64,000 nt of DNA from NCBI RefSeq assembly GCF_001194135.2, contig NC_068988.1, positions 15,000,369 through 15,064,368 on the forward strand. The letters are read 5' to 3'. This stretch comes from Octopus bimaculoides. Its lineage: Eukaryota. The position numbers were made by a program, and so were the translations under genes. The notes under the pieces were generated by a model. The model was not told where the DNA came from, searched no databases, and saw only the letters and a program-made list of their open reading frames with translations. Positions 5,132 to 58,500 of this stretch are shown in pieces; position 1 is the first letter of the stretch, and each line of letters opens with the position of its first letter.

Positions 5132-8100
5132 TGGTTATATGGTTAAGAGGTTTGCTCCAAGCTACTTGTTTCAAGTTCAGTCTCACTGTGTGGCACCTTG
5201 GCCAAATGACCCCTACTATAGGCACAAGCCAACTGAAGCCTTGCCAGTGGATTTCGTAGATGAAAAGAAAGAAGCTTGTCGTGTGTGTGTGTGTGTGTGC
5301 ATGTTTGTGTCTCCTTGTCTTGGTATCACCCAATAGTTGTAAATGAGTGTCACTGTTATGAAAGCAGTGTCATTCATTTCCAATATTCTGACCATAAGGA
5401 AATATTCCCTTGCTTGGAAACAGATGAGGAATGTCAACATGAGCATCTGGCCATAGAAAATCTATCTCTATAAATTCTATCTGTAAGCATGAAAAAGGAG
5501 CAGGAGTGGCGGTGTGGTAAGTAGCTTGCTTACCAACCACATGGTTCCGGGTTCATTCCCACTGCGTGGCATCTTGGGCAAGTGTCTTCTACTATAGCCT
5601 CGGTCTGACCAAAGCCTTGTGAGTGGATTTGGTAGACAGAAACTGAAAGAAGCCTGTCGTATATATGTATATATATATGTATGTATGTGTGTGTGTGTGT
5701 GTGTATATGTTTGTGTGTCTGTGTTTGTCCCCCCAACATCGCTTGACAGCTGATGCTGGTGTGTTTACGTGCCCGTAACTTAGCGGTTCGGCAAAAGGGA
5801 CCGATAGAATAAGTACTAGGCTTACAAAGAATAAGTCCTGGGATCGATTTGCTCGACTAAAGGCGGTGCTCCAGCATGGCCGCAGTCAAATGACTGAAAC
5901 AAGTAAAAGAGTATAAAAGAGTATTAAAATAATGATGATCATCATCATTATTTTACTATGGCCAGGTACCAACCCAGGCCACAGCAACAAAGTCTACCCG
6001 CTACACTTCTCAGTCCATCATCACTGTCTCAAGGTCCAGGATACACTCCAGGCCAGCGTCTGCAATCAAGTTGTTGATGTAAGTGTAACAACATCTTCCT
6101 CATCTTACATCACCATGAACTGGGTTCCACAAGACTAATTTGGATGCTTCCAGTTCAGGGAGGCATATGAAGTGACCAGACAGTTGCAGTCATCTTTGCC
6201 TGATCTTCTCACTAACTTTCAGCAGGTCTCCATAAAGGCATTCATTTGTCATATGTTGCTGCCATTTCACATTTAGGGCCATTTGTAGCATCCTTGTGTA
6301 GCATCCATTTAGCACATTTGATCATTTCTTTGTCAGTGAACTGCCATATAATAGCACTGATTTGACAGTTCATCATCATGACAGATGATCATCATCATCA
6401 TGACTCCACTATAAACACTATGAAAGAAAAAGTAAGACAGAAGGAAAGGACAGTATATACTAACCCTCCGTTTGCTAGTACTGTATGAGTTCCAATAATT
6501 ACTTTGTTCACCCGAGACATCATAGCAAACACAGCAGAATCAGTGATCAACGTAGTTTCTATGTTGCTGGCAGCCAAACTCTTGGCCATTTTCTGACCCT
6601 GTTGAAAATTTAAAAGAAAAAAAAACATTTTTTTAAATATCAAATTTCATTAGGAAATCTTCAGAAAATAAAAATGACAATCTTACCAGAAGTATTTTAT
6701 AGAAAGTTCACGAAAGACTATACTGTTATACTGATAATGATTTCAATGTCAGAGTGTAATTTAGTTATGATACAGCATATGACTGAATAATTAAACACTA
6801 ATGCTAGAAATTATAAACAACTTACATGGAAAAACGGTGCTCCTTCAGTTACCATGACCTGGAATTTTCGTTTCCGAGCTGCACTCTAGTGGAAAAAAAC
6901 ACAAAAAAACAAATACAAGTATATCAGATGGTAAAGGACTGTAAAAAATAGTCAGATACTATACTAGAAGAGACACGTCTATTCCATGTCAGTATGTAAG
7001 AATGAATATAAATGAAGAGTATGGCACATAAAAGACACCATTTTCGAGTGTGGCCGTTGCCAGTACCGCCTGACTGGCCTTCGTGCGGGTGACACGTAAA
7101 AGCACCCACTACACTCTCTGAGTGGTTGGCGTTAGGAAGGGCATCCAGCTGTAGAAACTCTGCCAAATTAGATTGGAGCCTGGTGTTGCCATCCGGTTTC
7201 ACCAGTCCTCAGTCAAATCGTCCAACCCATGCTAGCATGGAAAGCGGACGTTAAACGATGATGATGATGACTTCTATGGTGATAGTAAATAAGTAAACAA
7301 AACATTCCGGAAGGTAATTATATAAATACCATTATCATAGGCAGAGGTGTGACTGTGTAGTAAAATGCTTGCTTCCCAACCACATGGTTCTGGGTTCAGT
7401 CCCACTATATGGCACCTTGGGCAAGTGTGTTCTAATTATAGCCTCAGGTCAACCAAAGCCTTGTGAATGGATTTGGTAGACAGAAACTGAAAGAAGCCCA
7501 TCGTATGTATATACACATGCATGTGTATTCTTTGTCTGTTCCCCACCACTGCTTGACAACTAGTGTTGGTGTGTCTATGTCCCCATAACTTAGCAATTTG
7601 GCAAAGAGATCAATAGAATAAGTACCAAGCTTAAAAAAAATAATAAAAAGTATTGGTGTCGATTGATTCGATTAAAAATTCTTCACAGTGGTACCCCAGC
7701 ATGGTTGCAGTCAAATGACTGAAACAAGTAAAAGAGAAAAATATTGGAACAAAACAACCTTGCTTCCATTATGATGTCCCTCATTTACGACTATCATGGA
7801 ATATCTAGATAAAGTTACAAACAAATACATACATATATATAGGCTGAGTTCCTTTCGAGTGTTGGGCCTGACAGAGGCAATGACCAAGACACCTTTGGCA
7901 TTATGTTGTGCTTGAAAAGAAGACCCATCAAGCTGAGTAAAATTGCAGTCGTGGCAGATACTGGTGTCATGGAAATTGGCACCTGTGCTGTAAATCAAAT
8001 CCACACTCATGAGCCTCTAGTTGGCTTGGGGCTAAAGTAAAAGACAAGTGCTCCAGGTTCCATGTAGTGGAACTGAACCCAAGACCACGAGTTTCTTAAC

Positions 8101-10476
8101 CACATAGCTATACTTACATTATTATAAATACCTTTATCTTGTATCTCTTATTTTTTTATCTTTAATTGTTTCAGTCATTAGACAGCGGCCATGCTGGGGC
8201 ACCGCTTTGGAGAATATTAGCTGAACAAATCAACCCATGTACTTATTTTTTTTGTAATTCCACCTTGGTAATTATTCTATTGGTTACTTTTGCTGAACCA
8301 CTAAGTTACAGGAATGCAAACACCCCACTAGTTGCCAAGCGATGGTGGGGGACAGACACACTCATAGATAGAGATATATATATGATGATGATATAGGATA
8401 GGCTTCTTTCAGTTTCTGTCTACCAAATCCACTCACAGGGTTTTGGTCAGCCCAAGGCTCTAGCAGAAAACACTTGCCCAAGACACCATACAGTGGGACT
8501 GAACCTAGAACCATGTGGTTGGGAAGCAAACTTCTTACTACTCAGCTACACATGCAATGATAAATATTGTTATTTTTTGTCTTAAGACTGAAGCGTCATT
8601 GTGGCAATGATTTTAACACACACACACACACACACACACACAACAACTTTGAAGTCTTTTTCATTATTCATCCACAACCTGGCTGAAGACTCTTGCTTTT
8701 TGTCTGCATATGAGGACTTTATTCTCAAAAATAATCACATCCGTTCCAATATACAGATTATTAAGTTTCTATCATCGTATCTCTGGTAAAATATATGACT
8801 GAATTTTCTCACTACAGTTAAACAATGAAGCTTAAAGTATCTAGACACAGATGAAAGCATCAAGAGTTGTAGTCTCTACATGTTTTTAGAAGTGCATTGA
8901 CAATACAAATGAAATGAGACAACTACTTAATATGTAAACTAAGTCATAAGCTTCACTCAACAAGAGCTCACTTTTAAGTATACAGCACTCACTAATAATG
9001 ATTCAGAAAATATTTTGGGTCAATTACTGAGATCAGTTTCAATGGGATTAGTTAAAAAAAAAGTTTATGAAGAACACCAGGCACTTATTGAAAACAATGT
9101 AGGTTACCTGCAATATCAGTATCATTGTGGGTGTTTGTGTGGTAAGTAGCTTGCTTACCAACCACATGGTTCCGGGTTCAGTCCCACTGCGTGGCACCTT
9201 GGGCAAGTGTCTTCTACTATAGCCTCGGGCCGACCAAAGCCTTGTGAGTGGATTTGGTAGACGGAAACTGAAGGAAGTCCGTCGTATATATGTATTTATA
9301 TATATATATATATATATAGTTAAAAAAAAACAAAAAAACAACAAAGTGAGGACGTGATATGGTTAGTATTATTGGACGCTCAGGAAAGGAAAGAGAGAGT
9401 GTATGACGTTTCGGGCGTAGCCCTTCGTCGGAAAGATGGAAAGTTCGGAGAATGGAAGAACGGAGAAAGAGGAAAATGGTACCGATGCCCACAAGGTTAC
9501 ATTATATATATATATGTGTGTGTGTGTTTTTGTTTGTCCCTCCACCATTGCTTGACATCCGATGCTGGTGTATTTACGTCCCCGTAACTTTGCGGTTCGG
9601 CAAAAGGGACCGATAGAATAAGTACTAGGCTTACAAAGAATAAGTCCTGGGGTCGATTTGCTCAACTAAAGGCGGTGCTCCAGCATGGCCGCAGCCAAAT
9701 GATTGAAACAAGTAATAGAGTAAAAGAGTACAGAAGCCCTTAAAATGATATCATTTATCTTTATCTTTTACTTGTTTCAGTCATTAGAGTGCGGCCATGC
9801 TGGGGCACCACATTGGAGGGTTTAGTTGACCAAATCAACCCTAAGTACTTTTTGTTAAGTGTAGTACTTATTCTACCATGTCCTTTTGTCAAACTGCTAA
9901 GTTACGGGGACGTAAACAAACCAACACCAATTGTCAGTGGTCGGGGACAAACACCAAGACGCACATGCACACACACCACAGACTTCTTTCAGTTTTTATC
10001 TTCCAAATTCACTCACAAGGCGTTGGTTGGCCTGGGGCTATAGTAGAAAAATGCGGTGCCCCAGCATGGCCGCAGTCAAACGACTGAAAAGAGTAAAAGA
10101 ATAAAAGAATATATATTCTGGGCAGGGGGACAGCTACAATAACTTGCTTTTATTCTTTTGCTGGTTTCAGTCTTTGGATTGCGACCATTCTGGGGCATCA
10201 GCTTTGATTACACCAGATCAGTACTTAATTTATTGGTTTTGAAAGGATGACGTGAAAAGACATTCGAGCGAGATCGTTGCCAGTGCCGATGGACTGGCTC
10301 CTGTGCAGGTGGCATGTAAAAGCACCCACTACAATCTCGAAGTGGTTGGCATTAGGAAGGGCATCCAGCTGTAGAAACTCTGCCAAATCAGATTGGAGCC
10401 TGGTGTAGCCACCTGGTTTCACCAGTCCTCAGTCAAATCGTCCAACCCATGCTAGCATGGAAAGCGGACGTTAAAC

Positions 10477-10510
<34 letters not shown>

Positions 10511-13500
10511 TATATGATGAGCTTCTTTTAGTTTCTGTCTACCAAATCAACTCAAAAGCTGTGGTTGGTCTGGGGCTATAGTAGAAAACACTTACTCAAG
10601 GTGCCACATGGTGGGACTGAGCCCAAAACGACATGGCTAGGAGGCAAGCTTCTTAACCACACAGCCATGACTGTACCTCACAGCCACACTAAACTGAAAT
10701 GTGCTGAAGAGGATTCATTGAATGTACCATATTAATTTTTGTAAAAGACAAGGCACAAGGCACCTTTATAAGAGAGGTGAGAACACATTAACCACTTAAC
10801 CATTGAAACTTTCTTTACAAGTTTTAGGGAGAAAGAAAACAAAGATAGATAACAAAGAAAAAGGGTGATGATGACGATGATAACGATGATGAGGAGAATG
10901 GTGATGAAAGAATAAAAGTGAACTAATTTCAAAATTCACCTTAAGAAATGCTTCGACAGATTTGGACCAGCCTGATGTCATGATTATTTCTTTGGCATGA
11001 ATATGCTCTAGTGCTTGTGATTCGATGTTTGGTATGCTGAAATTATACAAAATCATTTAGCATCATTATTATTTTCATGGTCTACATTGTTATGCTTGCA
11101 TGGGATCAGATGGACTTTGTTAAGGCAGATTTTCTACAACCAGATGCTTTTCCTGTCACCAACCTTCATCTGTTTCCAAGCAAAGAAATATTCCCCACGG
11201 TCAGACATGCTTCATGGAAGACTGGAAACAAAGGATACCATTTATCTGACAGTGTTACTCATTTACATCTATCAGGCAGTATCAAAATAAGGAGACAGTA
11301 AGACACACACACACACTGAGCTCCATTCAGTTTCCATTTACCAAAAACCATTTGCCTATAGTTCCACACAGAGGAGCTGAAACCATGTTGATTGGGCTGG
11401 CACACTAGAAGGCTGCGCCAGGCTCCAGTCTGGTTTTGCATGGTTCTCTATGGCAGGATGCCCTTTCTAATGCCAACTACTCTGATATTTTGGTATAGGT
11501 GAGTGAGCATTCAGCTTGTTCAGGTGACAACAGATTTTGGCACAGGAAGTAAACACAAACATACACACAGGTCCACTTGGAAATATATATACATATACAG
11601 AGGGAATGAAAGAAAGAGATGGTAAGAGGGGGAGAGATACATAACACATACATACAAACATAACTAGGTGCTCACAGAGTAAGAAAAACAACAAAGTCAG
11701 CAATAAATCAACCAAATAGGTGGCGCCAAAATAGCTGGGACCAAAATATCTCACACCCCAAATATCATTACTTAATAGATGGAAATGTGGGAAGAATCAC
11801 AAAAAAATATTATCTGAAAGCAAACTGACTTACCATGTCTCCAATTCAGATTTTATTTCAGAAATGGCTTCAATGATAATTGCCTGTATTATACAAATAT
11901 TTCAAATAATAAGAATATAGAGATTGTGAAAAGAAAAAAGGAAGAAGCTTCATTGAACTATCAAATATTAAGCAAAGAAGGTGGAAAATGAACAATAGAC
12001 TCAAGGGTACAATAGACTAACATTTGAAGTGTCACATGTAATAGAAAGTACAGAAAAACTGTTGAGTTTCCTTATCTATTTAAAAGATATAGATTTTAAT
12101 ATAATCAGCTTCTAAGGTCAAGGTGCCTGGCCTTGTGGTTAGGTTTTTGGACTCATGATAAGATCATAGGTTCATTTCCTGGATTGTTGCATCCCTGGAC
12201 ACGTTACATTATTTCACAATGCTTCAGTCCACTCAAATAAAAATGAGTTGCATCAACGACAGAGCAGCACTTCATAGACTTGTAAATGCAAGATGTCACC
12301 AGCCCTTGATGGCTCCAGCACACTGGACAACGATAGTACTATTGCAAATATGAATACCAGTAGAGACAACACAGAGTTCTAATTCTGCTGTTAAGATTGA
12401 TTTTGCTTTTGAGATTGACTGATTTTATTGATCAGTTCCCCTTCTCAGAGGAGAGAAGCTGAGAAATAAATGACAATGAAATAAAACAAACAAAATGCAC
12501 TCCTCCAATTCATCTTGGTGAGCAGCACTCTCAAATATGTGCTGACTCCAGCTGTGGCAGTCCATTCAGCTTGTTGCTTACTTGCTAATGTATATATGCT
12601 TTTATTCTTTTGCTGGTTTCAGTCTTTGGACTGCGGCCATGCTGGGTCACTAGCTTTGATTACACCAACCTGGTACTTAATTTAATGATTTTGAAAGGAT
12701 AAAAGGCAAATTGAAACAAGGCCAGTACAAATCTGTCAAAGCATTTCTTAAGGTAAATTTTGAAATTATTTCACTTTTCCTCTTCAATCCCCTTAACCCC
12801 TCCTCTTCATCGCCATCATCCTCCTCCTTTCTTCTTTGTTATCTATGTTTTGTTTCTCACTAAAATGTTAAACAATGATGATGATGAGGATGAATATACC
12901 TAAAAGATCAAGTAAACAACATTCCTATCCATTAAGAAACTGGTTATGTCCTTAAAGACGAAACTAATATTTCAGATGTTACAAATAACAGGGACTTCAC
13001 TCTTGAAGTGTACTAATAGTGGAGCACTGCTAAAGTGGCTTCTACCACTATAAAAATGCATTCAGTACATTCTGTGTAATTGTTGGCAAATGAGTGGAGA
13101 TAAAATATAGCTGAGTGTTCTTTTGTCTTGCCAAACACACAACAACCTCTTTAGAGTTAGCTACAATAAAATGAACCTGGTACACTCTGTAAGATGGTTA
13201 GTGATAAGATGGTATCAGCAGTAGAAACCATGTCAAAAATGGAATATATTAGGTTGTCAGAAAAATTCTTCATTTATCTTGGGGGTTTTTTTTCAATTAT
13301 TTTAAGAAATTAGTCAATAATATATTCTCCTTTATTGTTCCCAACTTCTAACCAACATTCCACTTGTTTGTCAAAGCCATCACTGATATTTTTTTAATTG
13401 TTGAAGAAAAATAGATTAAAATAAATACAAAAAAATCAAAGGCAGGTTAACTAGCAAGTTAGTTTTTGTTTGTGGCAGATGTTCAGGTGCAATAAAGACT

Positions 13501-16500
13501 GCAAACAAACAGGAAACAACTTCTATCTTATTCCAGGGTGAAAAACTAGAGGTAGTCGATAGCTTCCGCTATCTGGGCGACCAAGTTAGTAGTGGGGGTG
13601 GGTGCGCTGAAAGTGTAGCTGCTAGAATAAGAATAGCCTGGGCAAAGTTTAGAGAGCTCTTACCCCTGCTGGCGACAAAGGGACTCTCACTCAGAGTAAA
13701 AGGCAGACTGTATNNNNNNNNNNNNNNNNNNNNNNNNNNNNNNNNNNNNNNNNNNNNNNNNNNNNNNNNNNNNNNNNNNNNNNNNNNNNNNNNNNNNNNN
13801 NNNNNNNNNNNNNNNNNNNNNNNNNNNNNNNNNNNNNNNNNNNNNNNNNNNNNNNNNNNNNNNNNNNNNNNNNNNNNNNNNNNNNNNNNNNNNNNNNNNN
13901 NNNNNNNNNNNNNNNNNNNNNNNNNNNNNNNNNNNNNNNNNNNNNNNNNNNNNNNNNNNNNNNNNNNNNNNNNNNNNNNNNNNNNNNNNNNNNNNNNNNN
14001 NNNNNNNNNNNNNNNNNNNNNNNNNNNNNNNNNNNNNNNNNNNNNNNNNNNNNNNNNNNNNNNNNNNNNNNNNNNNNNNNNNNNNNNNNNNNNNNNNNNN
14101 NNNNNNNNNNNNNNNNNNNNNNNNNNNNNNNNNNNNNNNNNNNNNNNNNNNNNNNNNNNNNNNNNNNNNNNNNNNNNNNNNNNNNNNNNNNNNNNNNNNN
14201 NNNNNNNNNNNNNNNNNNNNNNNNNNNNNNNNNNNNNNNNNNNNNNNNNNNNNNNNNNNNNNNNNNNNNNNNNNNNNNNNNNNNNNNNNNNNNNNNNNNN
14301 NNNNNNNNNNNNNNNNNNNNNNNNNNNNNNNNNNACATAAAAGACACCATTTCGAGCGTGGCCGTTTTCGTGCGGGTGACACGTAAAAGCACCCACTACA
14401 CTCTCTGAGTGGTTGGCGTTAGGAAGGGCATCCAGCTGTAGAAACTCTGCCAAATCAGACTGGAGCCTGGTGTTGCCATCCGGTTTCACCAGTCCTCAGT
14501 CAAATCGTCCAACCCATGCTAGCATGGAAAGTGGACGTTAAACGATGATGATGATGATGATGATGACAAAAAGAAAACAAATTTATTTGACATCCCAATA
14601 CAAGGGAGATGGTACTCAAGAGTTCATCTCCAAGGGTAGTAACTCTGAATAATCACGGACTCAGACCGTGATGACTCAGCTAGCTAATGCATGTCAGCAG
14701 GAAAAGCAGGCGTAATATGATGTTGATGATGAAATAAATGATTAAAAAAGCATAAGAATTGATAGCAAATACTTTAAAAAATTGATATTTTACAACTTAC
14801 TTGGAAGTCAGGCACTTGTAGTGTGTAATCATCAGACACTCCTTCACTGACAAAACGTTTCTAGGAGAAATAACACAAAATAGTCAATAAATAAAGGGTT
14901 GAAAATTTTATGATTCGCTATTCACTAATATCTATTTTTTGTCAGTCGCTCCCATTAAATGGTATAGTTGTTCATACATATTATAATTCTGTTTCATCAA
15001 TTTCTCATAACAGTTTGGAAGTATACATTAGTTACTCAAGTCAACCAGGAAATTATTAAGAGCAGCCAAAATTTCCTTCATATCACACAATGCCATCTCA
15101 AAAGACAAAAGGAAAATGACAGATTGCGCAATATAGTTCTAGATACACTACAGCAAGAGAGAGAGAGAGAGAGAGATGCTTAGTGCTGGAACACTTCTGA
15201 TCACAAAGTCTGACTAATCAAAGTAGACCAGAGCTTAAACAACGTTAACATCAGATCAGCACGACTACTGGAGTACAGTAGACTGGTTAAATTCTGTTAC
15301 AAACACACATTAGGAAGCATCACTAATTATTACTTTCAATTACACCATGAATTTAGGAGCTAGATGTTAAGAAGTAAATAATTAAAAAAAAAAATGTAAT
15401 AAATAGTTTAAAAAGGAACATATATATAACAAACTAATAACAATAACTTTTACCTTCTACTTGTTTCAGTTATCAGACTGCAGTCATGCTGGAGCATTGC
15501 CTTGAAGAATTTTAGTCGAACGAATCGATTCCAGTACTTTTTTTTTAAAGACTGATATTTATTGTCGGTTTCTTTAGAAACTGCTAAATTACCAGGACAT
15601 AGAGACACCAACACCTATTATTACATGATAGTAGGCAACAAACACAAAGACACACAGTTATATATATATATATAAAATATAAGATGGGTTTCTTTCAGTT
15701 TCCATCAACCAAATCAACTCACAAGGCTTTGGCCAGCCCAAGGCTGTAGTAGAAGACACTTACCCAAGGTGCCAGGCAGTGGGACTGAACCCAGAACCAA
15801 GTGGTTGGGAAACAAGCTTCTTACCACGCAGCTATGCCAGCACCTATATGTAACTGAACATTCAATATAGCATACACCAAGTCTCTTTATGAACACTCAT
15901 CAACTTGCAGATCTCTCTATTAATGGTCCCAATCACATTTTGGAAGAGGTGTTCATTCTTATTTCGTATTTTGGTATTTTTCAAACACCTTCATATAAGG
16001 AATCTTGCTTTATTATCCATCTAGCAAATGCCTTTCTATTTAATGATATTATCAACTGTCAGATGTACAAACCTGTAAAGCTTCTTGTGGATCATCACCC
16101 AAGGTCTTGCCTTCGGCACTAATAACAAAAAAAAAAAAAAAAGATTGAAAGAACATTAATACCTTCATTGGAAAACATTCATAATGGAGAAAGTGAAAAT
16201 ATAAAGTGAAGGATGAACATTAATAACAATTTTAACTGGAAATTATGCATCACAGTTTTGATAAATACTGTCAGTGATATGTTAAATCCAATATAAGTAA
16301 AGAGCAAAATCTGACACCGTTAGTATTAAACATGACAATAATAAGTCAAAATTGTTTGACTTACAAGTGATGGGGTGATGAAATATGTTTTGTAGGATCT
16401 GATCTTATCATTGCTAATAAACTGAATAGTCATAAGTAAAACAGAAGCCATTTTTAAGAAAAGCAAATTTTAAAATTTAGTGTTGGAATTTTTCTCTATT

Positions 16501-24000: not shown

Positions 24001-27000
24001 TCACTGCTACTCCAGCCATTGAAAAACCTCTCACTACAGCTCAATGTTATTCATTCATTTTCCCTCACCTACATTAAATGTTTTGGACTGCCACTCATCC
24101 CCTCTCCTGTCATGGCTGTCTTTCTCAACCAGTTTGGCTGCAAACAAAAATACATTACTTATTATACATTATTATTTCTTACTTAGGCACAAATTTATAG
24201 ACTACTGTCTATAAATGAGATTTTATAGCATCAGTGATGTTTTTATTATACGTGGAGTTGGCTTCAACTCGATGCAAAAACAGGTTAAGTTGCCAACAAC
24301 AATAAAATCCATATAATTTGTATTTTTTCTCAAGAATAATGTTAATGTTTCATACACATTGTTAATACAAACATATATATGCTTAACTAACTAGACTTTA
24401 TATAACTGTGTCTATTATACCTGCATGCATATGTCCAGAGAGAGAGAGAGAGAGAGAGAGAAACTAATTAGGCATAATATAAATGTGTCTATTATACATC
24501 TGTGTGTGTAGAGAGAGAAAGAGAGAGATTCACTAGACATCATATAAATATGTACAGGCATCTTCAAAAATTTTGTGACACTTGCAAGTTTGGTAGTGAT
24601 TATACCTTGCCACTCTTGTCCAATCAGCTCCTGATTTTGTCCATCCATTGCACTATTTGCTTGCCTCTTGATCTACTAACCCCTACTCTTTTTTTTTTCC
24701 ATGAAAATGTTTTCCAGACCTCTGCTTCTTTGAATATGGCCATAATAGATGAGCTTTTGTTTTTACACAATGTTTAAGAGTTGTCTTTCACCTACATGTT
24801 GTAAATCCGCCCCCCCCCACTTCCATTCATTTGTCCAATGGTCTTTGCAAGAGACTTGTAACATTCTCCTATACACCCACATTTCAAACACATTGTCTTC
24901 TCTTCAAATTTGTCAGAGTTCATGCTTTGTGACCATAAATATCCTATTGGCCAAATGAACACTTGCACTAACCTTGTTTTTAACTCATTTGGGACACTTT
25001 TGCTGCTCCAGATGCTAGTCAAGACTAGCCATGACCTAATCCCTTTCTTAAATAATTAATTTTTTTTAATTGCTTATTTCTGAGAATGAAACTTTTTGCC
25101 TGAAAAATATAAAGGCTATTAAACTCTTTTCTTTTTGCATTGTAAGAAGCTCTTTATCTTCCTCCTCCTCCTCCTCCTCATCATCATCACTTAAAGCCTG
25201 TTTTCTATGCTGTCATAGGTTGGATGACTTGACAGCAACTGGCAAGGTCAAGGGTCACACCAGGTTCCATAGTCTGCTTTGGCTTGGCTTCTAGATAGAC
25301 CCCCTTCCTTATGCCAACCACTTCACAGAGTATATTGTGTGCTTTTTATGTAGCACTTTGGTTTTAGGATATCAATTCTTTTGTGGTGGGTGGCTCCTCT
25401 TGAGTAAGGGCAGTCCATCTTCACTATTTTATTATTTTCATTGTGGATTAAATCACTCTCTCATAGACACAATTTGTTAATTTGCTTTTTAAATTTTTTT
25501 TTTTTTTTTTTGCAGAACTAAGCGACATGTAGAAAGTCCTCAATCCGATAAACTCATTCCAGATTCCTTTATACGTGAAGATCTGTTACGTTTTTGTGAA
25601 TCTTTATACAGATATGAAACAGCTAAAGAGACAACATTTAGAAATGGTGAAGATTTTTGTAAAACCACAAGCTTTCTAAGCAGAAATCCATTCTCAACAA
25701 ATGCAGATATTCATTTGGATAGCTTAGCACTCAGCCATGAAATTCTAGGCTTTACCCTTGAGAGAAAATCCAGTAGTTTATCTGAAGCTGGTGGTGGCAT
25801 ATTTGTCACAAAAGGTTCAATACCAGCCAACACGTTTGTTTGTCTTTATCCTGGTAAGTTTAATTAAAACTGTTGTGTCTGGGGAGAGTCATTTTCTTAT
25901 TGTGCCTTAAAATTTAACACACTCACTGGTAAAATTTCCACTTATTTTTCTTTTTATTTTTCTAAAATTTTCATTGCGTCTTGCAACCTTATCAATCTTA
26001 CCGGTGAGTGTGTTAAATTTTAAGGCACAATAAGAAAATGACTCTCCCCAGACACAACAGAATATGCTTCAACACATGAAATCACATAAAAAAATCTTGA
26101 AAACCAAATCCAAAAACGAAATTTAATTAAAACATTTTAGAAAAATCATCATCATCGTCGTCTTAATGTCCTCTTTTCCATGCTTGCATGGATCAAAGAG
26201 AATTTGTTGTGACAGATTTTCTACAGCTAGAAGTTCTTCCTGTCACCAGCTCCCACCTGTTTCCAAATAAGGTAATATTTTCTCATAGCTAAACCTCCTT
26301 TTCATGGATGACTGCAATGGGATTGAACCCAGAACCATGTGGTTGGGAAGCAAGTTTGTTACCACACAGCCACGCCTGCACCTATTTTCTCAGGATAAAT
26401 ACCACAGGAACTGACCTATCAACAGTGTACAAATATTAAGTATCATGCATAGATGGCTGTTTAACTTCAATACTACCTCAGTTATGTTTGCCAAATTTTT
26501 ACTGAATCTTAATTTATTTTAAACACAGGCACAATTTATAGAGTTCACGATCCACTCTTCTTTCAAAGTCTTAAAAACCAATTCATTTTCCGCTGCGCTG
26601 ACCAAATACACATTGATGGTAATGACAGAGGATTATCAAAACTAATATTCAAGTAAGTGTTGTCTACAGCCCTTACTTGTTTACTGGACATTTCATTTCT
26701 TATCAGGATTGTTATGTTATAAAAACAGTTAAGCTATACATGTGTATCATTATTTTTCTTATAATTTTATATCACTGTATGCTTTAACCCTTTCACTACC
26801 AACCTTTCTGACACCTGATGAAGGCTGGAGGGTATATCAGCCGAAACGTTGTGCTAACAACAAACAAGATGGGGACAGATATCCGTCGAATGTAAATAAT
26901 GATCATCATCATAGTTGTATAAAATAAAAACATACCGAATATGACAGAAGTGTGACTGTGTGGTTAAAAAGTTTGTTTTGAAGCCCAGTGGTTTAGAGTT

Positions 27001-50160: not shown

Positions 50161-53100
50161 GATCCTCCTGTATTTTCTATTATCAAAAGCCAGGAACTTT
50201 TCAGTATATAATATCAATATACATACAGATTATTAAGTTGTATTTCAAGAGGCTCATTTGCCAATTATAAACACAAGATACAACAGTATCTGTTGCAAAC
50301 AAATGAGTTTACATCAAGAATCTTGCAAACCAAATACAAAAATGAAACGTATAGATTATAGATAAATGCAAAAGAGAAAACCAGAGAAATAAAGATCTTT
50401 GGAGTATAATAGTTGTTTAGTCACTGGCAAGGCCTGATCATGAATGCCGATTATCAAAAGTATTCCAACACATGGCCATCTTGTCATTTTGAATATCAGG
50501 AACTCTATTGTCTAATATGTCCTTCCTTTCCTTTAAAAAACTGTAGAATTTAATTTGAGGTAGACTCAGCTGCTACTTTCATGCCTGGCTCTCTGTTGGT
50601 TATGACAAGTGTTCCAGTTGATACAATCAACCGAATAGCCTGTGCATGAAATTAATGTGCAAGTGGCTGAGTACTCCACAGGCATGTGCACCCTTAACAT
50701 AGTTCTTAGGGAGATTCAGTGCGACACAGAATGCAACAACAAGGCTGGCCCTTTGAATTACAGGTACAACTCATTTTTGCCAGCTGAGGAGACTGAAGCA
50801 ACGTGAAATAAAGTGTCTTGCTCAAGAACACAGTGCACCAGTAGGAATCAAACTCACAACCTTACAGTTGTGAGCTGAATACCCTAACCACTAAGCCACA
50901 TGCCTTCAATGCTACCTTCAACAGATTAAGTGACTGCATAAAGGAACTAGGGTTGTTAGGCTCTGTCTGTTTGTCTGCCTTAGAGATAAGTGAGCACTTA
51001 GGGCTGATGAGGATGTTTCTGATCAAGTGACCAGTTCACTGTGTGCAGTCCATAAAAAGTGCATTTGATCATAAGGGTTACACGAGAAACTTCCAGAAAG
51101 CTTTGCCCATACTATTTGCAATACCTCACTGAAGTGCTTTTAGTAATACAGTTGGCCAGCAGGTAGTAGATAAATATGACAACAGCATCATCATAAAGAA
51201 AAAGACAATTGAATAATGATTATGTTCCGTTAATGTCAGAAAATTTTATCTTAATGGCAAAATCAAATGAAGGAGGGTCGCATATATGACCTTATTCCGC
51301 GGAAGATCTGAGACCGAGAGAACATAGTTAATTTCGAACTGGGGATCTAGCTTGAATGTTGCAATTGTGTAGACTCTGCTAAAGGCACTTAAGGGCCAGG
51401 TGGTCATGGTAAACCAGATAATTGATTAGGTTTACTGATTGAAGGTGCAAAGTGACATGGCAGAAGTTAGCAGAGATTGGTTGAGCAATGGCAGGTTTAT
51501 GATTCTACTTATGTACTTGATGATCTCCCTAGTGCTGGTGCCATGTACAAAGCACCTGGTACACTTTGTGAAATCATTGGTGTTAGGAAGGGCATCCAAA
51601 TGTAGAAAACAAACCAAAGTAGACATTGGAACTTCATGTAGCCCTCTGGCTTGTCAGTTTCTGTTAAACTGTCCAAACCAAGACTGAAATTTTTCAAGGA
51701 GGTGCCCCAGCATGGCCACAATCTAATGACTGAAACACACAAACGATAAAAGATAACAAACAAATGACTGCAGTATTACCTTATGACAATCACGGCAAAG
51801 AATATTTGTTTTGATCTCTTTATAATCCTGAGGCATTTCAGTATGTTTGACTTCTTCATCTTTCATTTTCCAGATTTGAGACATGTTCGTCATTGATGTA
51901 CCACAGATAGGGCATGCAAAATGGCTGGAAAAAAAAAAAGAAAAAGAAGTTTCACAAAACGTTTGAGCATCATTATTGTTTTAATCTCTACTTTTCCATG
52001 CTTGCAGGAGTCAGACAGAGTTTACTGAGGCATATTTTCTATGGTCGGATACTCTGCCTGTTGTCAACACACATTGGTTTCCAAACAGGGTAATATTTTC
52101 CCATAACCAGACACACCTTTCACAGAAGACTGGAAACAAACAACATCACTAGTTTGAGGGTGACACTTCTCTCTCTCTCTCTATCATCATCATCTTCATC
52201 ATCGTTTATATATATATATATATATATATATAAAGACATAGCAAGAAGTAAAAACTAACTTTAACTCTCCCTGCCATGAAGCATCTTTGCTCCTGTCTAT
52301 TGCTCTTTTTTCTCTTCATTACTGAAACCAACTCCCTCTTTTATCACTGTCATAACTTCTACCACCCATTGATATCCATCACACACTCCTATCTCCTTCT
52401 CTCTTCTCCATCACACTCTCTCACCTGTCACTCTGTCTCTCTACCATTACCCTCTGATTCTCTTACCCCACCTCCCACTCCTTGACTATTTGGATTCAGT
52501 GGACATTGAGTTATTAGCCTGGACTCCAAAATGTTAAGTTCACCCATACTCACTTTACCTAAACGTCCTACCTGGTGCTATGGAGATGGCACCAACCTGG
52601 ACACCAGTTTGCCATTACATCTTCAACAAGAACTGAAGCAATATAGAAGTGACATCCATGACCCTAGTGGACAGCTCCTTGAGCAATTACCTGGTCATTT
52701 ACTACTTCACTTCAGCATGAACTCTACCTTGCATAGATTTGAACCAGTAGTGTAATAGCATATTCACTCAGTCATTCTATCCTGACATCACATTGAAGCA
52801 TACACATTATAGACTACATTCAGGGAAATGTTGCCGTTAAGCAATCAATCTGGCTGTGATTTACTTGTGATAGCCTTTACTTTGAACTTCACAAATGGCC
52901 ATCCTCTCTGCTAGAAGTAGCAGCCAAATTCCCCTCAAACTTACCTTTATCATTTAAAAAAATGCAAGGACACATTGAATGATGTAGCCCTGAATACACA
53001 TTGTCCAACATCAAGAAGAGCATCCAGGCATAAGCCTTAAGCTGATAGTGGAGTGCTCAACCACATGCAGAGTGTTCCACTGATCGCATCAACTGGAACA

Positions 53101-54753
53101 CTCATTGTTGTAGCAAAAGGAGTGCCCAGCTTTTGATGCATACTGAGCAAAGCCAACTTCTCAGATGGCAGAGTTCTGTCTTCTTTTTTTACAAATTAAT
53201 ATTTTGCTAGCTTTAATTTGAGGCCTCTTACATCCACGTTATATTTCCAAGCTCAAAATTTCTTCTTTCATAGATTTAGTTATGAAAACTAGATCATAAG
53301 TATTCAAGACCTCCACACATACACAGGCTATCAGTTTAAAAGCAAAATACAAATAAAACACATACATACCCATATTGAAAAAGTTTTTTAAAACACTCCC
53401 TATGAAAGAAAAAAAAGAAAGATTATATAGATAAATTGTTTATGAAGTAGTGAATAAATGTATTTTTCAATATTTTGTTAACATATAGAATTTATAAACA
53501 TTTTATAATAGTTGCAGCATGGAAGGTGTTTAAAAACACACAAGCCATTTAAAAACACACAAAACCTGTTAGATTTACTTCAACATTTAAATTTAATTTC
53601 TCAAAATATTTTCGTCACTTTGAGACTGTGACCTGTTCACTGACTAAATTCCATGCAGTATGGAATTTTATCAGTGAACAGGTCGCGGTCTCAAAGCGAC
53701 AAAAATATTTGGACAAATGAAATTTAAATGTTGAAGTGAATCTAATGGTTTTTGTGTGTTTTTAAATGGCTTTATAAACATCTTCCACGCTGCAATTTTT
53801 TTTGTTTCAGCACACGCTCTCAGATCAGGTCACTTGCTATGCAAGTTCATCTCCATAATTATAATAGTTGGTTGTAGGAATACAAACCTATGATGCTAAG
53901 GAATTAAAAGATAGTGAAAAGATGCACTGTCATCGGCCACTTCAGCGATTTTGATTTTGATTTCACTTGCATCAATAGGTCTTTGCAAGCAAAGTTCATT
54001 GTCCAATGAATGAGGGATATGAATGAGGGGTCAGAAATGTCAGAAGCAAAAGTTTTCTCCAACTTACTCGTGAATCATATGCCGACACTTAGGGATCCTT
54101 GAAGGTTTTCTGGAAGTATGCAGATTCTGAAGACAAACTGGGCATTCATTGTGAGATATTTTTTCTAAACACTAAAAAAAAAAAGAAAGAAAGAAAAAAA
54201 GATGAACTATTTAAGATTTTCTTCACATAAAGAAATAGAAACTTTATTTCACTTTCATTTTTATTTTGTCATCATTCTATTCTGCAATTTGAAGAAGTTA
54301 ACAATAAGCTATATCGAAGCGAAGTTCTTTTATGACAATGATGTACAGAAAGCGAGAAGGAAATATAAATTATCTAATATATGAAATAGACATGTGTGTG
54401 TGTATTCACTTTCCACGTAAAAACGGCTTCACCAATTACTTCCATACTTGTGATGCATGAATAATTTGACCTTGGACATATAATAGGGTCTTTATATTTA
54501 TGATTCACTTCTTTAAAAAGGTTTCCTCAATGTCAACTTCCAGTATTGACGTAAAAATGGCAAAGTCTCTCACTCTCTATTTTAATGTTTGATATTTGTA
54601 AACAACTACAATTAATTACTGAAAGAAATATTTACGAAGTTCACAAACTTAAATATTCGGTACAAGATAATTTTTAACGTGCTTTTATTTATACGATTTT
54701 TTTTTCATTTGATGTTTATCTCATTCATTATTTGCAATGTTCTCTCTCTCTCA

Positions 54754-55560: not shown

Positions 55561-58500
55561 CATATATATATATTTATTTATTGGGTTGGCAACTAAGTTC
55601 CCAACGTTTTTTTTAATTTTGGAATTTATTTTTTTTGAGAATTCTATTTTTGAATCATTTTGGAATCTATTTTGTATTTTTCTAGTTAATTTTAGTTAAT
55701 GTTTATTTATTTTCAGATCATTAAAATGGAATGTCAAGTTAAGAAAAATGAGCATTTTCGACACCTCCTTCTTTTTGTTTTTAATCAAGGTTCTAAGGCC
55801 GCAAAAGCTGCTCGTGGCATTTATGCTGTGTATGGAGACGGTGCCATAGCTGAAAGAACTGCTCGTGATTGGTATGCCAAGTTCAAAAGTGGAAATTTTG
55901 ACCCCAAAGTCGCACCTCGTACTGGCCGTCCAGTTAAGTTCGATGAAGAGCGATTAAACCAACTTTTACACGAAAATTCTCGTCAAACATCAAAGGAACT
56001 GACAGAGAAAATGGAATGCTCCCACGCTGCTATAGAGAAGCATCTTCACTCGATGGGAAAGGTTCAGAAGTATGGAACTTGGATTCCGCATGCTTTAAGT
56101 GACAACAACAAAAATCAACGAGCCACAATCTCCGCTGGTTTGCTTGCTCCTCACCACTCAACTCATGGACACAAGCAACGATATCTTTACTGAATCGTTA
56201 CTGGTGACGAAAAATGGTGCCTGTGCATCAATATGAAGCAGCGTAAGGAATGGCTTAGCCCCAGTAAACAAGAGGCACCACGCGTGAAACAAGATCTTCA
56301 TCCATGTAAAATGATGTGAGTGTGGTGGGACTGGGAAAGGATTATCCATTATGTATTGCTTGAACGAAACCAAACGGTCAACGCGGAACTCTATGTTCAA
56401 CAGATGGAATGACTCAACATGGCTATTCAAGAGAAAAGACCTAATCGGCAACATGGAGTTCTTCTGCTGCACAACAACGCCCGCCCTCATATAGCCAATA
56501 TGACCATCTGCTTTAACATTGTTTCTATGGCAGAATGCCCTTCCTGATATCAATGACTAATATCATAATCAGTTTTTTTAATTGGTGTAAGAGACAACTC
56601 CAAATATGTTTTGGTTAAATAATTATTGTAACCTCATCAACAGAGCAAACACTTCACTATAGGTGCAGGCACGGCTGTGTGGTAAGACGCTTGCTTCATA
56701 ACCACATGATTCTGGGTTTAGTCTCATTGTGTGGCACCTTGGGCCAACCAAAGATTTGTGAGTGAATTTGGTAGGTGGAAACTAGAGGAAGCCTGTCATA
56801 TATATATCTGTGTGTTTTTGCATCTGTTCCCCACCACTGATTGACAGCTGGTGTTGATGTTTACATCCTCATAACTTAGTGATTCGACAGAAAGGACCAA
56901 TAGAAAAAAAATGAAGAATTGGTGTTGATTCAGAATGGCCACAATCTAATGACTGAAGTAAGTCAAAGATAAAAGATACTTTCCAAAGTAGTGGAAGAGA
57001 CTCAGTAAAGACTGAACACTAATTGGCATAGCAATACAGAATTGTACAAAACAATTCTAGGAAAATTTCAACAATGAGGTTTCATATACAGGACCACCAA
57101 AAGTCAATTTCAACTAAATGATTTAACTTAACTTAGATAATTGGGCAAGAAAGACAAAGAGAAATGATTTTATGACACAGTTCTATATTTAAGAGATGAG
57201 GAATTATGTACATTATTTACATTATTTACATTTGAAGGATATTTGTCCTCATCTTGTTTGTTGTTAACACAACATTTCGGCTGATATACCCTCTAGCCTT
57301 CATCAGATGTCTTGGGAAAATTTCGAACCTGGGTTCTCATTCCTAAGGTATTTTTCATCGTCGTCGTCATCGTCGTTATTGTTATTATTATTATTATCAT
57401 TATTCAGGTCACTGCCTGGAATCGAACTCGGAATCTTGGGGTTAGTAGGCCACGCTCTTAACTACTATGCCATATGCCCATGACCTGAATAATAACAACA
57501 ACAACATCAAAAAATACCTTAGGAATGAGAAGCCAGGTTTGAAATTTCCTCCAAGACACCTGATGAAGGCTGGAGGGTATATCAGCCGAAACGTTGTGTT
57601 AGCAACAAACAAGATGAGGACAAATATCAGTCAAATGTAAACAATGTAAATAATGATTTTATGACTTTCTAAAAAAAAAATTTTCATCTCACCGACAGAG
57701 TCTGCAACCATCACAGTGAAATTGTTTTAGGTCATTGCTATCATAAAGTCGACACTTGGCACAGAAGTACTGTGCAAACTTGATGTCACAATTTGAACAA
57801 CGGTCACTGACCTGAGAGAAATGGTGCAAAAAGAAAAAAAAATATTAAAAATAACAAAGTAATGTGTGTATTTATGTGTGTAATGTAATACTTTCTAATA
57901 TAAGTGCAAAGCCTGAAATTTTTGTGAGGATGATGGGACTAGTCAATTACACTGACCCCAGTGTTCAACTGGTACTTAATTAATCAACCCTTGAAAGGGA
58001 TGAAAGGCAAAGTCAGCCTCAGCAGAGTTTGAACTCAGAACATAAAGAAAACCAGAAGAAATACCACTGAGCATTTTGTCCATGGTGCTCATAATTCTCC
58101 AGCTCACCACCTCAAGTGCGTATTAAATAATGCATGCATACATACACATACATATAACACACACACACACAATATATATACATCATCATTATCATCATCA
58201 TCGTTTAACGTCCGCTTTCCATGCTAGCATGGGTTGGACGATTTGACTGAGGACTGGTGAACCAGATGGCTACACCAGGCTCCAGTTTGATTTGGCAGAA
58301 TTTCTACAGCTGGATGTCCTTCCTAATGCCAACCACTCCGAGAGTGTAGTGGGTGCTTTTACGTGCCACTGGTATGAAGGCCAGTCAGGCGGTACTGGCA
58401 ACGGCCACACTCAAAATGGTGTATTTTACGTGCCACCTGCACAGGAGCCAGTCCTGTGGCACTGGCAACGATCTCGCTCGAATGTCTTTACACGTGCCAA

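Follow-up and report, generated by a model that had tools for sequence, protein, structure and literature searches.

The EIF2B2 locus and an inverted copy of its exon 7 end

We analyzed a 64,000-nucleotide (nt) stretch of the Octopus bimaculoides genome (contig NC_068988.1, positions 15,000,369 to 15,064,368 of the forward strand), hereafter the window, whose minus strand encodes eIF2B beta (housekeeping gene EIF2B2). Intron 5 of this gene carries an inverted copy of the end of the gene's own exon 7 together with the adjoining 5' splice site, and the two segments are predicted to pair in the unspliced RNA. The peptide encoded by exons 6 and 7 matches human eIF2B beta in PDB (E = 3.5e-12), and spliced exons 5-7 translate to a sequence identical to residues 110-178 of the O. 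bimaculoides protein XP_014769484. EIF2B2 has 13 coding exons, with exons 12 and 13 lying beyond the start of the window. Exon 5 (60 nt, placed by its spliced translation) occupies 14860-14801, exon 6 (50 nt) 11883-11834 and exon 7 (97 nt) 11036-10940, all on the minus strand; exon 7 encodes residues 146/147-178 and ends in AAG, followed by GUGAAU, with the donor GU at 10938-10939. The exon coordinates and the spliced translation agree with the exon numbering used in a preliminary description of this DNA.

Comparison of the window with itself by blastn aligns 10822-10973 with 12865-12719 as reverse complements (77.6% identity over 156 columns, E = 2e-30). A repeat finder returns inverted arms at 10900-10980 and 12712-12792 (81 nt, 83%), and Smith-Waterman alignment extends the arms to 10973..10811 and 12719..12875 (170 columns, 77%). 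We refer to the source segment as arm A (10811..10973, minus strand); it takes in the terminal 34 nt of exon 7 (10973-10940) and then runs through the donor and roughly the first 128 nt of intron 7. Arm B (12719..12865, plus strand), as aligned to arm A, is a sense copy of the exon 7/intron 7 junction on the plus strand and is therefore antisense within the minus-strand transcript, where the coordinates of exons 5 and 6 place it inside intron 5 (14800-11884, minus strand). The first 60 aligned columns form a core with 54/60 matches, in which 10914..10973 of the minus strand pairs with 12719-12778 and which spans Lys171, Glu174, Lys178 and the 5' splice site. The preliminary description had reported an inverted duplicate of the exon 7 end and donor, with four mismatches in 54 nt and a loop of about 1.75 kb. 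The duplicate is real, with bounds now set at 12719-12865 and 10811-10973; the mismatch count is exact at 10967-10914, and the loop measures 1746 nt and contains exon 6.

Self-BLAST depth is 1 for both arms in a window of which 32% consists of self-similar repeats. The arms are therefore a unique local pair, and membership in a repeat family is ruled out. Theirs is the only low-copy inverted pair in the window that has arms no more than 5 kb apart and touches an exon, and since it is found in three independent assemblies it is not an assembly artefact. A multi-copy repeat fragment resembling a terminal inverted repeat (12589-12700, plus strand) flanks arm B proximally, outside the duplex.

Fusion of the copy to a retroelement tail

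The distal end of arm B (12865) adjoins GTTAAACAATGATGATG... at 12867. This is the 3'-terminal motif GTTAAAC(GAT)n of a family resembling short interspersed elements (SINEs); the motif occupies 12867..12893 on the plus strand and is fused to arm B without a SINE body. The motif occurs 13 times in the window, where none is expected by chance, and forms the 3' terminus of a SINE-like repeat of about 190 nt. Twelve of the 13 tails are preceded by the repeat body (...CCAACCCATGCTAGCATGGAAAGCGGAC), and only the tail at 12867 is preceded by the EIF2B2 copy, on the same strand. At the O. sinensis EIF2B2 locus there are 10 tails, the sole orphan being the orthologue of the arm B tail; the O. vulgaris locus likewise has 10 tails but no orphan, the orthologous tail having changed too much to match. 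No copy of this family was found at the EIF2B2 locus of Argonauta. The 13 sites in the window are spread across 137-59912 (for example 7250, 10470, 14537 and 58209), and the family gave no Rfam or tRNA match, with no known RNA family or tRNA-derived head found in the window.

A fragment of cellular RNA on the 5' side joined to a retroelement end on the 3' side is the layout of chimeras formed by template switching of reverse transcriptase (RT) (PMC4476161, PMC2104539). Arm B and its tail have this layout, being a cellular copy fused to a retroelement 3' end in the same orientation. The fusion is exact to 1-2 nt and oriented as expected for template switching, and there is GT(T)AAA microhomology at the junction between the continuation of arm A (TTGTAAAGAA) and the SINE tail (CGTTAAACGA). 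Judging from this architecture, arm B was probably pasted in by a retroelement RT. Because the copy includes intron sequence, its template was either unspliced RNA or DNA; as the fragment spans the exon-intron junction, an RT template would be unspliced EIF2B2 RNA, present at the insertion site.

A DNA-level origin, in which fork stalling or filler DNA at a break produced a templated inverted duplication beside a severely 5'-truncated SINE, appears unlikely to us. It is kept in consideration, to the detriment of RT insertion, by the lack of a significant target-site duplication around the insertion: the best alignment of the flanks is matched by 40% of shuffles in O. bimaculoides and by 72% in O. 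sinensis. An apparent TAAAAG...AAACA duplication was rejected as no better than shuffles; target-site duplications may have decayed. DNA copying also accounts for the intron sequence as easily as copying of pre-mRNA does, and the source is just 1.75 kb away, which is typical of templated insertions. However, every tail found at the three loci has a SINE body save the arm B tail and its O. sinensis orthologue, and the exactness of the fusion, its template-switch orientation and the shared GT(T)AAA likewise argue for RT. We regard the origin of the structure, which is real and lineage-specific, as reasonably well explained by RT.

A predicted RNA duplex over the exon 7 donor

In the unspliced RNA, pairing of the arms is predicted to enclose the exon 7 donor in a long double strand. 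Co-folding of the arms yields -163.4 kcal/mol for the sense (minus-strand) transcript and -143.5 kcal/mol for the opposite strand, compared with -68 +/- 5.4 kcal/mol for dinucleotide-shuffled controls. When 2.5 kb (13100-10600) is folded, 129 of the 170 arm A nucleotides pair with arm B, and pair probabilities from 10972 through the donor to about 10915 are mostly 0.94-1.0, with one pair at 0.67; all these energies and probabilities are equilibrium predictions. The core is computed to be a 58-bp helix with two internal mismatches, set within a helix of about 150 bp, and its energy is -82, -83 and -81 kcal/mol in the three Octopus species despite five differences. Both the donor GU and the Lys171 codon AAA (10963-10961, minus strand) lie within the predicted duplex, all three adenosines of the codon pairing with uridines of arm B. 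That the two segments can pair in the pre-mRNA, as the preliminary description proposed, is borne out by this very stable predicted duplex over the exon 7 end and donor.

In work on octopus and 21 other species, a potential intramolecular substrate for editing of double-stranded RNA (dsRNA) was defined as a reverse-complement match of at least 80% over at least 50 nt within +/-2 kb (PMC9989829). The O. bimaculoides pair, with a core of 54/60 and arms 1746 nt apart, falls within this definition; the arm spacing in O. sinensis (about 2.7 kb) and O. vulgaris (about 4.2 kb) exceeds the +/-2 kb window.

The geometry, in which exon 6 follows one arm and exon 7 ends within the other, would also fit back-splicing of exons 6-7 to a circular RNA or dicing of the hairpin to small RNAs directed against EIF2B2, and in plants hairpin small-RNA genes are known to arise when a target gene undergoes inverted duplication (PMC3237417). 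Either outcome is scarcely credible here, however, as the downstream arm covers the donor required for back-splicing and self-targeting of an essential gene is unlikely to be kept.

Distribution and divergence among octopods

We compared four EIF2B2 loci, those of O. bimaculoides, O. sinensis, O. vulgaris and Argonauta; the protein cluster of O. sinensis eIF2B beta likewise includes O. bimaculoides, O. vulgaris and Argonauta hians. Both arms were found by BLAST in O. sinensis and O. vulgaris, which settles the question, raised in the preliminary description, of whether other Octopus species have the copy. In Argonauta the exon is conserved and arm B is absent by BLAST. A scan of +/-11 kb in Argonauta for partners of the exon 7 end reaches -37 kcal/mol at best, which is background level, and this hit was rejected as a counterpart of arm B; the same scan gives -82 to -83 kcal/mol in the three Octopus species.

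Lineage-specific insertions have made the loop differ in length, from about 1.75 kb in O. bimaculoides through about 2.7 kb in O. sinensis to about 4.2 kb in O. vulgaris. O. vulgaris has also gained 82 nt at the proximal edge of arm B. Further length differences lie nearby. O. sinensis and O. vulgaris have about 2.7-2.9 kb extra at 10764/10765, 46 nt past the distal end of arm A, and O. vulgaris has about 1.6-1.8 kb extra in intron 6 at 11462/11463, which lengthens its loop. An insertion of about 1.1 kb in intron 5 of O. bimaculoides (13433-14573), absent from O. sinensis and O. vulgaris, holds a 621-nt run of N and a SINE copy.

Divergence of the arms matches that of neutral intron. In a comparison of O. 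bimaculoides with O. sinensis, well-aligned intron is 93.2% identical (3474/3728), arm B 92.5% (11 mismatches against 10.0 expected) and the intronic part of arm A 93.8% (8 mismatches against 8.8 expected). The arm B core contains a 56-nt run identical in the three species, which is the fifth longest of 507 runs in the alignment from exon 5 to exon 8, and three of the runs at least as long are purely intronic. Elevated conservation of arm B was therefore rejected, its rate being neutral and the 56-nt run belonging to the upper tail but not being unique.

For the kind of change, the six sequences (two arms in each of three species) were compared by column, and transitions were classed by their effect in the sense RNA. 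Within the 58-pair core 53 pairs are invariant, four vary on one side and are all still paired as G.U, and one is lost in O. vulgaris. Across the whole of the arms, 18 transitions keep the pair as G.U and 3-4 give an A.C mismatch (binomial p = 0.002 for 18:4, and 0.011 for 9:1 in unambiguous blocks). Older events, between the arms or on deep species branches, divide into 14 G.U vs 1 A.C, and those private to O. sinensis or O. vulgaris into 4 vs 3. Strand-biased mutation would mimic an excess of G.U, so strand bias was measured twice within the same gene: repeat copies in the same transcription unit differ from their consensus by 137 vs 136 changes, and polarised O. sinensis/O. vulgaris substitutions over the whole gene number 73 vs 73 (transition/transversion ratio 1.85). 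On these controls, transcription- or replication-linked strand bias was rejected as the cause. Mutagenesis at R-loops, or by ADAR acting on hybrids, was set aside, since A>G and C>U changes are about equally frequent and the two arms contribute about equal numbers of them. The surplus of transitions that keep the pair as G.U points to a possible weak constraint on the helix. The preliminary description had taken decay of the duplex region at the neutral intronic rate, together with a lack of any editing or splicing change, as refuting its proposal; the rate is indeed neutral, but the kind of change is biased toward kept RNA pairs.

The arms differ from the controls with a Fisher p of 0.004, in a test that was conceived after the data had been seen and that includes 3-4 events in a low-complexity, microsatellite-like stretch of uncertain alignment. 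Both circumstances weigh against an active or constrained helix, as do the neutral rate and several other observations. No double-sided compensatory change was found in the 58-pair core among the three species. About 15 transversions and several indels, always pair-disrupting, are not visibly depleted; arm B of O. vulgaris has lost 21 nt from its low-complexity middle, with the core kept; and splicing could remove intron 5 ahead of the transcription of arm A. The neutral total rate and the undepleted transversions and indels are not predicted by simple purifying selection on pairing and stand unexplained.

It is possible, though doubtful, that the structure is an inert relic, that is, a neutral by-product in which removal of intron 5 or the action of helicases separates the arms and the G.U excess is due to chance. 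The divergence of arm B (92.5% against 93.2% for intron), the rank of its conserved run alongside intronic runs as long or longer, the lack of compensatory double changes, the deletion and edge insertion tolerated by O. vulgaris, the drift of the loop from 1.75 to about 4.2 kb and the lack of any isoform touching exons 6-7 all fit such a relic. A bias of 18:4 against controls of 1:1 (p of about 0.004) does not, and a 58-bp helix of -82 kcal/mol with a pair probability near 1 would be difficult to prevent, with arm A transcribed only some 900 nt behind exon 6. We consider it quite unlikely, on the other hand, that the helix is kept under selection in Octopus, decaying almost only via G.U, and serves eIF2B beta as a newly arisen duplex for editing or splice control. 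This protein is a subunit of the hub of the integrated stress response, and if selection were indeed acting the locus would be a dated and mechanistically explicit example of the birth of an element resembling an editing-complementary sequence (ECS).

Lys171 and RNA editing

Octopus K171, in the motif GWSKS, aligns with R172 of human eIF2B beta in PDB, as the preliminary description had stated. Its further proposal, that editing of this codon would yield Arg, finds little support. Among 109 homologues the position is held by R in 61, by K in 31 and by E in 8; K is typical of molluscs, and K171 is encoded in four of the four octopod genomes. Since K is the usual mollusc residue, a change to Arg would be no restoration of anything special. 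ADAR prefers U or A as the 5' neighbor of the edited adenosine and G as the 3' neighbor, and by these usual preferences the middle A of the AAA codon (10962) is not among the favoured targets, with 10942, 10941 and 10952 being better-placed exonic adenosines. A long near-perfect helix favours promiscuous over site-selective editing by ADAR.

That arm B acts as a site-specific ECS directing Lys171-to-Arg recoding is very improbable. K171 is paired within the predicted helix, and other animals most often have R here. Nevertheless, the helix is of the long, nearly perfect kind, no A.C mismatch or bulge marks 10962, K and R interchange freely, and ECS-like conservation above background is lacking. 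The complementarity of arm B to the exon 7 end provides the stable predicted duplex expected of an ECS, but arm B is not conserved above the intron background. In addition, no EIF2B2 editing site was found in the searchable published supplements, which is weak evidence, the files being partial. The exon-intron ECS paradigm (GluA2 Q/R and R/G, Drosophila Syt1) is reviewed in PMC5705066, and for cephalopods there are reports of conservation around edited coding sites and of neural/coding vs ubiquitous/repeat patterns of editing (PMC5705066, PMC9068888). The earlier premise that coleoids are known to recode through exon-intron duplexes was overstated, as the paradigm comes from mammals and Drosophila.

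The neighboring Trp169 codon (10967-10969) is an octopod-specific replacement in a conserved eIF2B beta motif, octopods having GWSKS vs G(K/R/F)S(K/R)T in nearly all other animals. Opposite this codon, CA has become UG in O. bimaculoides arm B, giving two adjacent wobble pairs.

The exon 7 donor and splicing

The exon 7 donor reads GUGAAU in O. bimaculoides (in the region of window positions 10935-10937), GUGAGU in O. sinensis and O. vulgaris, and GUAAAC in Argonauta, and arm B, as a fossil copy, keeps GUAAAU. Both donor changes are A>G in arm A and both leave G.U pairs; the change at +5 improves the match to the consensus. This drift may reflect coincidence, pressure on a partly occluded donor, or the hard-wiring of an edited A.

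Exons 6 and 7 together measure 147 nt, therefore their joint skipping would keep the reading frame. It is conceivable, though distinctly improbable, that the duplex serves as a splice-masking switch that hides the exon 7 donor and loops out exons 6-7, thereby tuning the output of eIF2B beta; the same low probability attaches to its conceivable outcomes, namely regulated in-frame skipping (147 nt, -49 amino acids), retention of intron 7 or slower splicing. Such a switch would be consistent with the inclusion of the donor GU and of positions -34 to +128 in the predicted helix, with the frame-preserving length of the two exons and with the pair-preserving substitution bias, and the drift of the donor toward the consensus since the insertion could compensate for occlusion. 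However, no annotated isoform lacks exons 6-7: as far as annotation goes, the RefSeq X1/X2 isoforms of O. bimaculoides and O. sinensis differ at the 5' end only and never in these exons. A search of the eIF2B beta protein cluster for exon-skipping isoforms found none. The segment that would be skipped is a highly conserved core, and the product would probably be dead; the lack of covariation, the neutral rate and the absence of the element from Argonauta also argue against a switch.

Proposed history of the element

Taking these observations together, we favor, with a probability of roughly one half, the view that arm B is an accidental self-antisense insertion that forms a generic ADAR substrate, mostly tolerated and possibly weakly constrained. 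The insertion would have occurred in the Octopus ancestor, after the split from Argonauta. At a nick in intron 5 of EIF2B2, a retroelement RT would have begun with the 3' end of a SINE-like RNA, switched after about 30 nt to an unspliced transcript of EIF2B2 and continued for about 160 nt across the junction of exon 7 with intron 7, and the product, as its architecture suggests, would have been fixed in the orientation opposite to the gene. From that point on, each EIF2B2 pre-mRNA has contained a near-perfect complement to the end of exon 7 and its donor, located upstream by 1.75 kb (O. bimaculoides) to about 4.2 kb (O. vulgaris).

The duplex would presumably act like any long intramolecular dsRNA in the coleoid nucleus, that is, as a promiscuous ADAR substrate in both arms. 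Up to nine exonic adenosines could be edited (10973, 10963-61, 10953-52, 10949 and 10942-41), and the donor may be transiently occluded until the duplex is unwound or edited. The element would thus be no tuned, site-specific K171R device and would be tolerated more than designed; most likely it is an ADAR substrate that the gene tolerates, with a slight sign of constraint.

Should the helix form and undergo editing, RT template switching onto nascent host RNA would be a coleoid route to exon-targeting dsRNA, in contrast to the slow assembly of an ECS by point mutation, and a conserved segment of eIF2B beta would then be subject to promiscuous recoding or donor occlusion. An inert structure would offer a clean natural test of the amount of perfect dsRNA over a constitutive 5' splice site that an essential gene can bear.

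Comparison with known systems

We class the element with two known kinds, intragenic inverted repeats predicted to form pre-mRNA dsRNA and chimeric retro-insertions; what is unusual is the nature of one arm, which consists of the end of a constitutive exon of the gene itself and the adjoining 5' splice site. With an ECS (PMC5705066) it shares an intronic stretch complementary to an exon end, a duplex that precedes splicing and coding adenosines beside a splice site. Known ECSs are short, imperfect, conserved above the intron background and tied to a documented edited site, whereas the predicted octopus helix is 58-150 bp long, nearly perfect, evolving at the neutral rate, restricted to Octopus and formed with an upstream partner at 1.75-4.2 kb. 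It resembles an ECS or inverted-repeat dsRNA but misses the conservation above background that marks an ECS. Inverted pairs of the Alu type are likewise long, near-perfect intramolecular duplexes that arise from retroelement activity within a transcription unit, and they are hyper-edited; here, in contrast, the arms are no pair of repeat copies, one arm being a constitutive coding exon end with its 5' splice site and the other its copy.

Short, local stems that occlude a splice site, or stems with covariation and a known alternative isoform, are represented by the MAPT exon 10 stem and by SMN2 TSL2 (terminal stem-loop 2). The predicted octopus duplex is like these in having a 5' splice site within a helix and unlike them in showing neither covariation nor an annotated alternative isoform.

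In the U6/L1 (PMC4476161) and tripartite (PMC2104539) chimeras, as in arm B and its tail, a cellular fragment is joined in the same orientation to a retroelement 3' terminus with a simple-repeat tail, with microhomology at the joint. The octopus case differs in that the cellular part is an unspliced fragment of the recipient gene, in that no target-site duplication is detectable, and in that the retroelement part amounts to about 27 nt plus tail from an uncharacterised octopus SINE-like family.

Other features of the window

The EIF2B2 start codon lies at 20234, and a divergent neighboring gene begins at about 21014 on the plus strand, some 780 nt upstream; its product of about 295 amino acids has no Pfam hit on record. 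A low-copy repeat makes up the 3' end of intron 6 (11039-11316) as far as the exon 7 acceptor; it shares 71% identity with 51946-52140 and 68% with 5287-5483, in inverted orientation. Two inverted arms of about 51 nt, 39 nt apart and 84% complementary, lie at 10056-10248; the fragment that flanks arm B is of the same repeat family, and the pair of arms resembles an internally deleted miniature inverted-repeat transposable element. Four low-copy palindromic stretches (1373-1546, 25870-26060, 53512-53795 and 57211-57655), 170-470 bp in length and 73-83% self-complementary, are possible remnants of hairpin-forming transposons.

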